NCBI GenBank assembly: GCA_951406725.2
Contig: OX597819.1
Location: 93,392,001 to 93,516,000 of the forward strand
DNA length: 124,000 nt
From: Octopus vulgaris
Lineage: Eukaryota
Reading direction: 5' to 3'
In this document: one piece after another, positions 3,216 to 30,719 of the stretch
Layout: every line of letters begins with the position of its first letter
How positions within the stretch are numbered: the first letter of the stretch is position 1
The notes under the pieces: generated by a model
The model's input: the letters and a program-made list of their open reading frames with translations, nothing else
Databases searched by the model: none
Told to the model about the DNA's origin: nothing
Position numbers and translations under genes: made by a program

Positions 3216-3339
3216 ACGCTGATGATGTTTAATCCTTTAGCATAAAGACTACTCTGTCAAATGCAATGTTTATTTATTCACATTGTTTTCAATTAATCAT
3301 GCTTTATTCTTGAAGTTTCGAGATTTCAAAGATGTGATT

Positions 3340-3567
3340 ACTCTCTTTACTCTTTTACTTGTTTCAGTCATTTGACTGCGGCCATGCTGGAGCACCGCCT
3401 TGAGTCGAGCAAATCGACCCCGGGACTTATTCTTTGTAAGCCCAGTACTTATTCTATCGGTCTCTTTTGCCGAACCGCTAAGTGACGGGGACGTAAACAC
3501 ACCAGCATCGGTTGTCAAGCAATGCTAGGGGGACAAACACAGACACACAAACATATACACACACACT

Positions 3568-3614
<47 letters not shown>

Positions 3615-3777
3615 GACAGGCTTCTTTCAGTTTCCGTCTACCAAATCCACTCACAAGGCATTGGTCGGCCCGGGGCTATAGCAGAAGACACTTGCCCAAG
3701 ATGCCATGCAGTGGGACTGAACCCGGAACCATGTGGTTGGTTAGCAAGCTACTTACCACACAGCCACTCCTGCGCCT
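3340..3777 (-). mobile_element. SINE family A, full length, CpGs intact
   Basis: Runs from the ttactcttttacttg tail to the ctcctgcgcc head; central (TA)n. Confidence 0.85.
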
Positions 3778-8169: not shown

Positions 8170-8490
8170 AGATGCGTGGCTTAGTGGTTAGAGTATCCGG
8201 CTCCCAATCGTAAGGACGTGGGTTCGACTCCCGACGTCACGTTGTGTCCTTGGGCAAGACATTTTATTTCACATCCCTTCAGTTTATTCATTTGGCAAAG
8301 ATTAGTTGTACCTGTAATTCAAAGGGCCGACCTCGTTACATCCTGTGTCACGCTGAATCTCCCTGAAAACTACACTAAGGGTACGCGTGTATGTGGAGCG
8401 CTCAGCCATTTGCATGTTAATTTCACGCGTAGGCTGTTCCGTTGATCCGATCAACTGGAACCCTCGTCGTCGTAATCGATGGAGTACCAG
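8170..8490 (+). mobile_element. tRNA-derived SINE (further family)
   Basis: tggcttagtggttagag A-box and gggttcgactccc B-box; its tail recurs at about 55090-55170. Confidence 0.7.
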
Positions 8491-28440: not shown

Positions 28441-29406
28441 GTTGGTGCGTGTATTAGTATGGCACATCATATGTGATGTGATGTGTAAAGTCATGTGGTG
28501 TAGTGAGGAGAAGAGGGGGAGGGGGAGAAGAGGGGGAGAAGGGGAGGGGAAGAAGAGGGGGAGGAGAAGGGGGAAGAGGAGAGGATGGGGAGAAGGAAGG
28601 GAAGGAGGGGGATGAAGGAGGAAAGAGGGAGAGGGGGAGAGAGAAGGGGAGAGAGAAGGGGAGAGAGGGAGTGAGGGAGAAGAGGGAAGGGGAAGAGGGA
28701 GGGAGAAAGAGGGAAGAAGGGAAGGGGAGTAGGGGTGAAAGGATGAAGGACTGAAGAAGTAGGGGTTGGGGGGAGAAAGGATAGGTGAGGAGGGGGAGAG
28801 GGGGGTTAGATGAGGAGGGGGGAGAGTTGAGACCAAATGGCGTATAAGAGCGAAGATATATATATATATATATATACATACATACATGTGTGTAAATGTA
28901 TGTATATATATATATATGTGTGTATATGCAGACACCAGGGAGACTTGTGTTGTGCTGTCTCTCTAAGACTTGTATTTGTTAGTAAAATCGATAAAAAGAG
29001 TGCAATGAACTTGCTATGGAGTGTGGGAAATCCAACGTTTCGGAAAGAGTCTTTCTTCAGTGTAAAGTTGAAAGGAGAGAAATTACTGAAAGACACTATC
29101 CTCTAAGTTAGAGAAACTGGCTGCGACTGTATGTGTGCGTGTATTTTTGTGTGTGTGTGTTTGTACGCATTGGTGTACGTACACGTCTGTGTGTTTGAGT
29201 GTAGGTGTGCGCGCACGTGAGTCTGTGTGTTAAGATGCCAGGGGTACCTCAGTTCTGAATAATCATTGAAAGACAGTTTAAGAATAGCAATAAAACCTGC
29301 TTAGTAAGGATTTCCGATCATAGATTCAAAATGAACGGCATTTATAAATACACGCACGCCCGTGCACACACATGCATGCTGACGTTGTTACATGCATACA
29401 CATAGT

Positions 29407-29438
<32 letters not shown>

Positions 29439-29515
29439 TGTGTGTATACATAGATATATATAGGTATATATATAGACATATATATATATACGTATATCTA
29501 TATATATATCTATAG

Positions 29516-29554
<39 letters not shown>

Positions 29555-29761
29555 GTGAAATAGAAAGATGAATAATCTTGTAGTAGATTAATCATTAGTT
29601 TAACCGATACCTTAGTAGCAAAAATCACAGCAGTAAAACAGCACGGTTGGAGGTACAACCATTTGGTGTTGCAACCGTGCGTTGGTGCGGATAATTGAAA
29701 TTAGAACATTATTGGTGAATTGAAGAAATGGAGCTGAACGCAGATTGAACAGAAATCGTTT

Positions 29762-29855
29762 TATTTCATTCTACACGTGTTTCGAAAGGCACAAATTACC
29801 AAAATCCGATGGAATAATGGGACCATATTGTGTCTTTCTCTTCAGGAAGAAAATA
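29762..29855 (-). ncRNA. Type I hammerhead ribozyme fold (left arm of the palindrome)
   Basis: Exact reverse complement of 30022-30115. Confidence 0.78.
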
Positions 29856-30021
29856 GGAAATCCGTTGGAAAAACAAAAACAGAACAGAGGCGGAGCAAAA
29901 ACAAATCGAACTATGCTCCTAAGAGCCCATGGCGAAAGTTTCGCCATGGGCTCTTAGGAGCATAGTTCGATTTGTTTTTGCTCCGCCTCTGTTCTGTTTT
30001 TGTTTTTCCAACGAGATTTCC

Positions 30022-30115
30022 TATTTTCTTCCTGAAGAGAAAGACACAATATGGTCCCATTATTCCATCGGATTTTGGTAATTTGTGCCTTTCGAAACAC
30101 GTGTAGAATGAAATA
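30022..30115 (+). ncRNA. Type I hammerhead ribozyme fold (right arm of the palindrome)
   Basis: Stem I UAUUUUCUUC/GAAUGAAAUA (1 mismatch); CUGAAGA 30032-30038; stem II GAAAG/CUUUC plus CACAA/UUGUG; GAAAC; palindromic stem III ACACGUGU; GUA site, cleavage after 30105. Confidence 0.8.
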
Positions 30116-30161
30116 AAACGATTTCTGTTCAATCTGCGTTCAGCTCCATTTCTTCAATTCA

Positions 30162-30205
<44 letters not shown>

Positions 30206-30719
30206 CATACATAGATACATATACACATTTATGCTCAGGAGCACACTGCTCATATTATCAATGAATGTAGGAATCCATATAAGGACTGAATCTCAGTTGA
30301 ATATCTATATATAAACGTCAGCGAAGAAACGTGACTACGTAATTTGAATTTACGTAGTAACTCCGTAAAAAAATACAATTCTTCAAGATAGATCACAAGA
30401 AGACCGACCTATATCCTATATAAATACAATCTAATCAATCAAACAAAATTGAACAGTAAAAGATACGTGTAACACTTTTGTACATCAGTATAGTTTTCTT
30501 TATAATTCAAATTACGTGATGTCGAATATTATCAAACACACACACACACACATGTATGTATGTACGTATGTATGTACGTACACACGTATATGGAGACTTT
30601 GAAAAAATACACATCTCACGTTCCTATCCTATCACTCGCACACTCACACACACACCAAGGATTTAGAGAAACACGTAACACACACATAAAGGTATATATA
30701 TACACACATATATATATAC

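Follow-up and report, generated by a model that had tools for sequence, protein, structure and literature searches.

The window analyzed here is a 124-kb stretch of the Octopus vulgaris genome (contig OX597819.1, positions 93,392,001 to 93,516,000 of the forward strand), which was studied against the whole genome (2.8 Gb in 227 contigs). It contains a 458-bp near-perfect palindrome, likely the trace of a single event in which a Penelope-like element (PLE) of the Hydra clade, very young and present in many copies, inserted into a (TA)n microsatellite. Only the pseudo-long terminal repeat (pseudo-LTR) part of the element is present, twice and head to head, and both copies would have been made by reverse transcription primed at two different start sites. 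Positions within the element are given below on a 3624-bp reference unit.

Aligning the left half locally to the reverse-complemented right half delimited the palindrome at 29710-30167. Positions 29710-29937 pair with 29939-30167 around a single unpaired base, G29938, and the arms are identical except for an extra A at 30014 in the right arm. The left copy, or direct arm (29553-29937, minus strand), runs from unit 3624 down to 3240 with 99.2% identity to the reference unit over 385 nt (blastn). It is the 3′ terminal, pseudo-LTR part of the element, with its sense on the minus strand, and it carries three private substitutions (unit 3514, 3581, and 3582). Arm alignment and unit mapping assign 157 nt of it to a tail that is found in the left arm only (29553-29709, minus strand, unit 3468-3624). 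The right copy, or inverted arm (29938-30167, plus strand, unit 3239-3467, 99.6% identity by blastn), lacks the tail, has its sense on the plus strand, and carries the private 1-nt insertion A30014; the central G29938 can be read as its unit 3239, as unit 3238-3240 is A-G-T. With three substitutions and one indel, the window copy is very young. A common-template test found no private variants common to both arms, the shared part being consensus except for A30014.

Both copies end in simple repeats. The left copy terminates with ...ATGTG against (TA)n at 29407-29552 (Tandem Repeats Finder (TRF), period 2, 72.5 copies), and the right copy terminates with ...CACCAATA followed by TATATA at 30167, against (AT)n at 30165-30223 (TRF, period 2, 28.5 copies), of which 30168-30223 is the right part of the target. 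A preliminary description, made from the sequence alone, had reported a 458-bp near-perfect palindrome with a 1-nt centre and one indel, a left copy continuing 157 nt beyond it, a right copy stopping at accaat before atat (unit 3467), and (TA)n at both outer ends. All of this stands, the palindrome by arm alignment and the flanks by the TRF arrays that adjoin both arms. No further copies of the same repeat were found elsewhere in the window.

The genome holds many copies of this repeat. With the 386-nt left copy as query, at least 40 scored loci at 99% identity were obtained among 1722 first-look candidates. The 29 best-matching copies (picked by score) were mutually identical over 385 nt, meaning that the family is very young, and in most copies the sense strand runs on upstream of the palindrome centre. 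Twenty-nine loci, 20 of them with 7-kb flanks, were mapped to the reference unit, a sample possibly biased to seed-rich loci. At 26 of the 29, two joined arms lie head to head, an inverted one that ends at unit 3461-3477 and a direct one that ends at 3624, and both adjoin (TA)n. Genome-wide counts of exact words, which are lower bounds, gave 256 copies of the terminus ...AATGTT followed by (TA)n at unit 3472, 61 copies of the window-type terminus ...ACCAATA followed by (TA)n at unit 3467, and 325 tail read-throughs (unit 3453-3487). The stop of the short arm is not arbitrary but a recurrent terminus beside the main one at 3472. A tail-bearing partner was present at seven of the nine resolvable loci among ten 3467-type loci taken in list order.

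Coordinate pairing on the six chromosome-scale contigs C1 to C6 gave 48 head-to-head pairs of one tail-bearing and one tail-less copy, and no tail/tail, tail-less/tail-less, tail-to-tail, or same-strand pairs. The palindrome is the family's normal insertion form, and the proposal that it arose at insertion is supported. The tail is the interval between two alternative reverse-transcription start sites. Inverted 5′-truncated partners and a tail at one end are typical of PLEs (Craig et al. 2021, PMC8557442); what stands out here is the strictness of the one-tail rule and the length of the tail (~150 nt, not 30-40). At the sampled loci, junction positions vary widely along the 3.6-kb unit, and symmetry within 15 nt is seen at about 40% of the junctions. 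Of the 16 asymmetric junctions, 13 have a longer direct arm and 3 a longer inverted arm, which in these three reaches far beyond its partner (1670 vs 2867, 763 vs 2249, and 857 vs 3061).

The centre of the window palindrome lies at a preferred 5′ end, unit 3237-3240. Both arms start within 12 nt of unit 3240 at 15 loci, compared to 0 and 4 loci at two control sites; this difference led us to reject the possibility that the hot spot was a sampling artefact of a query that itself began at the centre. Seven to eight of the 48 pairs on contigs C1 to C6 have a spacing that matches the window. Arms starting with G followed by AGTTTCGCC numbered 42, while the exact read-through copies at the same place had C in 478 cases and G in none. 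The G is untemplated, because no read-through copy has G there; in GAGTTTCGCC it stands directly before A3238 within ACAGTTT (unit 3237-3240 being 29937-29940 in the window).

Untemplated Gs are known from other retroelements as copies of the RNA cap. By analogy, the extra G looks like a cap copy from a transcript starting inside the pseudo-LTR (ACA+1GTTT). The centre is probably the 5′ end of the RNA, not a random truncation, and on this reading the arms in the window would be near run-off copies made from a short RNA with its start within the pseudo-LTR. Two other ideas on the centre were discarded: a small hairpin beside it (ACUGAUAAACAGU) as a pause site of the reverse transcriptase (RT), which was dropped for the RNA-end reading after the untemplated G, and an antisense hammerhead, in which position 17 would be G.

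The family includes a tandem array with a period of 3624 bp. This array (locus L031, G000:C1:119512000-119521999, continuing to ~119525400) has at least four units that are 99.9% mutually identical and contains an intact 895-aa open reading frame (ORF; P0001, L031:6661-9348, minus strand) that starts 48 nt past the unit 3′ end. It is a possible source locus of the family. A Pfam search of P0001 returned nothing, with the RVT models below threshold, and PDB sequence searches with the protein and with a family profile returned nothing meaningful, so the element was classified from its motifs, its fold, and published descriptions. Among 5.8 billion proteins searched, about 100 relatives of ~700 aa were retrieved, with E-values down to 1e-133, including one from the octopod Argonauta hians. 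The family alignment displays RWK/RWR, DKT, K-DHK...P.RLI, FDIxxFYPSI, PMGS, and YRDD, followed on the C-terminal side by a CxCx5C linker (in the homologues), VY...YIG/YVG..R..H, and CxxC-E...N-CxH. In this alignment (A1), R37 and W38 are near invariant, D122-K123 are invariant and followed by T, C855 and C858 precede E861, and N874 precedes C883 and H885, while the internal CCHH is absent, as in the Hydra clade.

The best PDB fold matches of an AlphaFold2 (AF2) model of the homologue P0006 (predicted local distance difference test (pLDDT) of 91.7) were reverse transcriptases, with telomerase TERTs at ranks 2-6 (probability 1.00). GIY-YIG was the only Pfam family matched by more than one member (4 of 53, best E-value 6.3e-5), and the alignment suggests that P0001 itself carries such an endonuclease. 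Pseudo-LTR-type structures were also seen: the tandem array, a partial copy followed by the element body (L062), the inverted partners, and the tail at one end. (TA)n adjoins every outer end reached in the sampled loci except one (L002/L032). With these motifs matching the diagnostic ones of PMC8557442, the element would be a PLE of the Hydra clade; motifs, RT fold, and GIY-YIG all agree with the preliminary description in its assignment of a Penelope-type insertion.

The linker region of the octopus protein differs from that of its relatives. Where the homologues have CNCRxxxxCPL, P0001 reads HNL..SSS.QGVP within a long low-complexity insert, located at residues ~640-790, the place of the zinc-finger linker in relatives. 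The literature ties this linker to target choice, and the octopus family still inserts strictly into (TA)n, although the one ORF copy sampled lacks the linker cysteines. Two distant metagenomic relatives have the same head-to-head habit: one carries two identical hammerheads facing apart (L058:4794 on the minus strand and L058:5610 on the plus strand), and in the other (L056) pieces of related ORFs, encoded on the opposite strand, flank the ORF that was queried.

Each arm of the window palindrome contains a putative type-I hammerhead motif, recognized by descriptor match and hand reading at 29760-29857 (minus strand) in the left arm and at 30020-30117 (plus strand) in the right arm. Our own descriptor (CUGANGA, a closed helix II, GAAA, a minimal helix III, U-H, and helix I) matched exactly twice in the 124-kb window, once in each arm, compared to 0.05 matches expected per shuffled window. 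The outward-facing hammerhead that had been proposed on each strand is recovered in this way as a predicted motif. In the right arm, the 5′ strand of helix I (30020-30031) is followed by CUGAAGA (30032-30038), helix II (30039-30093), GAA (30094-30096), ACACGUGU (30097-30104), A17 (30105), and the 3′ strand of helix I (from 30106), with cleavage predicted between A30105 and 30106. The left arm has, in descending order, the 5′ strand of helix I (29857-29846), CUGAAGA (29845-29839), helix II (29838-29784), GAA (29783-29781), ACACGUGU (29780-29773), and A17 (29772), with cleavage predicted between 29772 and 29771.

The 5′ strand of helix I is CCUAUUUUCUUC, to which the post-cleavage GAAUGAAAUA pairs back with nine pairs and one mismatch. 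Helix II, of 55 nt, opens with G10.1 and closes with C11.1, and the helix III word ACACGUGU provides A15.1-U16.1 and C15.2-G16.2 around the palindromic loop ACGU. The core (C3-U4-G5-A6-N7-G8-A9, G12-A13-A14, A15.1-U16.1, and H17) is complete in both arms (CUGAAGA...GAA-A...U-A). On the unit, the motif lies at 3320-3420, ~215 nt before the 3′ end and ~263 nt before the ATG; in each arm, it is ~170 nt from the presumed RNA start and ~60 nt upstream of the internal start site.

Support for the helices comes from a comparison of four families. The element of Argonauta hians, whose protein is 34% identical, has CUGACGA, a 62-nt helix II, and GAAA-CAAUUG-UU at the same distance of ~263 nt before the ORF, with one motif in each of two copies 3217 bp apart, and motifs were also found in two metagenomic relatives. 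Although unrelated in sequence, the helix II segments of the four families all fold into hairpins along their whole length. In helix III, three of the four have words that differ yet are self-complementary (ACACGUGU, ACAAUUGU, and AUAAAUUUAU), and the word of the fourth, ACAAGUUUGU (metagenomic L058), is an imperfect palindrome. The Rfam covariance models gave no hammerhead in the window at the gathering score or at E ≤ 10, the output at the palindrome consisting of generic sub-threshold microRNA (miRNA)-hairpin matches due to the palindrome and (TA)n. However, the Rfam 15 hammerhead models match no motif of the element group (window, L052, L055, and L058), not even a compact, canonical-looking one with a 10-bp helix II in L058, and their silence in the window carries little weight since they also miss these relatives. 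Rfam-based scans undercount hammerheads of this kind.

Junctions also occur at the predicted ribozyme site. Palindromic junctions fall at the predicted cleavage site at nine loci, compared to 0 and 4 at the two control sites, some arms start exactly at G3410, the base after it, and the helix III palindrome ACACGTGT forms the centre of four junctions. These hammerhead-site junctions, at unit 3396-3410, correspond to 30092-30106 and 29771-29785 of the window. This signal, which would be indirect evidence of self-cleavage, is weaker than the one at the centre site. A metazoan retrozyme, with noncoding tandem hammerhead units of 170-400 nt, was rejected as a reading of the locus, as the only tandem period found is the 3624-bp coding unit and the copies in the window are inverted.

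These observations can be assembled into a mechanism whose steps are deduced from the family statistics and published in-vitro work, the end product alone being seen directly. The GIY-YIG endonuclease of the element ribonucleoprotein would nick both strands of the (TA)n target, and each 3′-OH would prime reverse transcription of the element RNA, at different start sites. A start at unit 3624 would yield the left arm with its 157-nt tail, and an internal start at unit 3467 (3472 being commoner in other copies) would yield the right arm. Both cDNAs would then run to the 5′ end of the RNA, which is probably the capped start of a transcript begun inside the pseudo-LTR. Their ends would finally be joined, most plausibly by one polymerase switching from the RNA end onto the other cDNA, giving a palindrome with a 1-nt centre. 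The palindrome is in this sense a by-product of integration.

The rule of one tail per pair suggests that the reaction is concerted and takes place at adjacent sites of a single RNA. We tentatively extend this to a proposal for concerted two-strand integration of this PLE, on which the evidence leaves us rather more doubtful than convinced. One arm would always use the outer start and the other always the inner one (48 pairs against none of either alternative type), as would follow from a protein dimer binding a single RNA at two neighbouring start sites, with both polymerases running on to one shared and often capped 5′ end. The product formed most often would be a short pseudo-LTR-internal transcript copied twice, as in the window. 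If this is true, the several hundred near-identical insertions form a natural record that could settle how PLEs build inverted repeats and tails.

Several points weigh against the two-start-site account. Priming from both strands and the template switch are deduced steps, and the reading of the G as a cap is by analogy. The arms in the window start at 3240 and 3239, 1-2 nt short of A3238, and have no extra G. The bias toward longer direct arms (13 of 16) is predicted by fold-back and not obviously by two independent polymerases. Some symmetric junctions lie on short natural palindromes (ACACGTGT and GGCGCC), which is compatible with self-priming or mutual annealing. For the Hydra placement, P0001, the one ORF copy sampled, has none of the three CxCx5C linker cysteines. 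Sampling bias may affect the first 29 loci, and the genome-wide counts take in exact words only.

The preliminary description had explained the palindrome by snap-back synthesis at the 5′-truncation point of the insertion: a single cDNA primed at unit 3624 would fold back, copy itself outward, and be joined as a hairpin to the other side of the target. The perfect symmetry around a 1-nt centre at the window locus and the sizeable share of symmetric junctions in the sample fit such an event, as do the junctions centred on ACACGTGT or GGCGCC, but the 3′ end of the window cDNA (...GGCGAAA) has no nearby complement from which to prime. An internal fold-back would also leave the inverted arm shorter, as it is in 13 of the 16 asymmetric junctions; however, three inverted arms are far longer than their direct partners, and a shorter arm cannot template a longer one. 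Moreover, self-copying should pass through the tail into the flank, whereas none of the 48 pairs has tails on both arms and the inverted arms end in a tight cluster at 3461-3477. A related PLE, in addition, extends both strands in vitro (Frangieh et al. 2024, PMC11167929). We consider snap-back unlikely: the centre is a shared 5′ end (15 loci and 42 G-initiated arms), the pair types stand at 48:0:0, and the inverted arm is the longer one in 3 of 16. The preliminary description was right on the class of element and wrong, or at least incomplete, on the mechanism.

It is much less probable that the palindrome now acts as a hairpin-RNA gene, co-opted as a source of small RNAs or as an A-to-I substrate that regulates the family or a host gene. 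As RNA, the palindrome is predicted to fold into one hairpin (-417 kcal/mol, z = -55 vs shuffles), so that a read-through transcript would form a perfect duplex of 228 bp. The folding agrees with the earlier suggestion of a double-stranded RNA (dsRNA) of about 228 bp that competes with the ribozyme fold, and the hairpin would sequester the ribozyme if transcribed. The miRNA-precursor models of Rfam do give generic sub-threshold matches, but these are far under the gathering scores, as for any long hairpin, and the insertion process has produced hundreds of such loci, this one among them, so that selection need not be invoked. Conservation cannot be judged for a copy as young as that in the window.

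Some long-read libraries are known to produce perfect palindromes as artefacts, and the preliminary description had named a fold-back read or an assembly error as a real alternative, in which a fold-back long read or a mis-join made the second arm. PLE structures do trouble assemblies (Craig et al. 2021, PMC8557442). However, the mirror symmetry ends at 229 nt, the left arm continues into its 157-nt tail, the flanks differ, and an indel separates the arms. The terminus of the right arm is used by 61 other loci, the head-to-head form recurs with constant geometry at dozens of independent loci, and the same form is described for PLEs in other species (PMC8557442). With arms that are unequal, flanks that are not mirrored, and recurrence throughout the genome, an artefact is very unlikely indeed.

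An origin at the DNA level, either as a foldback or miniature inverted-repeat transposable element (MITE)-type transposon with TA duplication or as a later inverted duplication of a 5′-truncated copy, would account for the inverted repeat and the TA-rich flanks but is barely conceivable, as the arms represent the 3′ end of an element that encodes an RT, the outer ends are two retro-element termini and not identical terminal repeats, junction positions vary by locus as independent cDNA 5′ ends would, and the recurrent terminus at 3467 would not be where a later duplication stops.

Other features of the window were noted besides the insertion. A purine-rich array of GGA/GAG type lies at 28505-28729, ~0.7 kb upstream of the (TA)n target. 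A tRNA match at 8175-8236 (plus strand, model positions 6-65) scores 31.2 against an Rfam gathering score of 29 bits and could be a gene, a pseudogene, or a tRNA-derived repeat. Long stop-free frames of up to 720 codons, with no Pfam match, occur on both strands of 116268-119749; they are explained by (TATG)n, (TG)n, and TA-rich microsatellites, not by genes.

No new biology is needed for the palindrome in the window, which a known class of retrotransposon makes routinely and which should be read neither as an assembly error nor as a hairpin gene. The value of the family lies elsewhere. Very young, abundant, and with exact 3′ termini, it is useful PLE material and a test-bed for integration, and the counts from the assembly reveal a strict one-tail-per-pair rule, two fixed start sites ~150 nt apart, and a cap-like G. 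With its hundreds of long perfect palindromes, the family is also a candidate source of genome instability and, if they are transcribed, of dsRNA.

Compared to known systems, the element is closest to the Hydra clade, which is reported from Cnidaria, Mollusca, and other aquatic phyla and is characterized by RWK, DKT, CxCx5C, CxxC/CxH around E and N, (TA)n targeting, and hammerheads (PMC8557442). It shares with that clade a single ORF with an RT plus a GIY-YIG at the C terminus, the RWK-type and DKT motifs, the lack of an internal CCHH, insertion into (TA)n, a pseudo-LTR hammerhead, and both tandem and inverted insertions. It differs in the size of the unit, 3.6 kb against less than 3 kb, because a low-complexity insert of ~190 residues precedes the endonuclease. 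It also differs in the sampled ORF, which lacks the CxCx5C cysteines while (TA)n targeting is kept, and in the 55-nt helix II of its hammerhead.

In the minimal type-I hammerheads of metazoan PLEs, helix III is short and carries a palindromic loop, helix II is large, G10.1-C11.1 is present, and action as a dimer is probable (Cervera & de la Peña 2014, PMC4209133). The octopus motif resembles them in its type-I topology, its location in the flanking repeat, G10.1-C11.1, a larger-than-usual helix II, and a 2-bp helix III with a palindromic loop (C-ACGU-G) that would suit a dimer. Unlike them, it has a helix II that is a 55-nt hairpin instead of 6-8 bp and no extra nucleotide between A9 and 10.1, and it is undetected by the Rfam models.

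Twin priming of human LINE-1, as Ostertag and Kazazian reportedly described in 2001, also has both nicked strands priming, with an inverted 5′ part as the result. The octopus insertions would resemble it in that both nicked target strands prime reverse transcription. However, LINE-1 twin priming copies adjacent, different segments of the RNA and duplicates nothing, whereas the octopus arms hold the same segment in both orientations and begin at two fixed sites. Priming of the LINE type was rejected on these grounds.

The Poseidon element PAc of the anole (Anolis carolinensis) offers the closest experimental parallel (Frangieh et al. 2024, PMC11167929). In vitro, both target strands are cut and extended by its protein, for which a dimer is predicted; reverse transcription begins internally at two sites, the stretch between them is the tail that genomic copies have at one end, and the hammerhead is dispensable for in-vitro insertion (PMC11167929). 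PAc belongs to the Penelope/Poseidon clade and the octopus element to another. The tail of PAc is 30-40 bp and lies within the ORF start, while that of the octopus element is ~150-157 nt and lies upstream of the ORF. The one-tail rule (48:0:0) and the cap-like G come from the octopus genomic copies and are not stated in the part of PMC11167929 drawn on here. The AT-rich targets and two-site starts of PAc fit the octopus footprints, which agree with the published in-vitro study and extend it.

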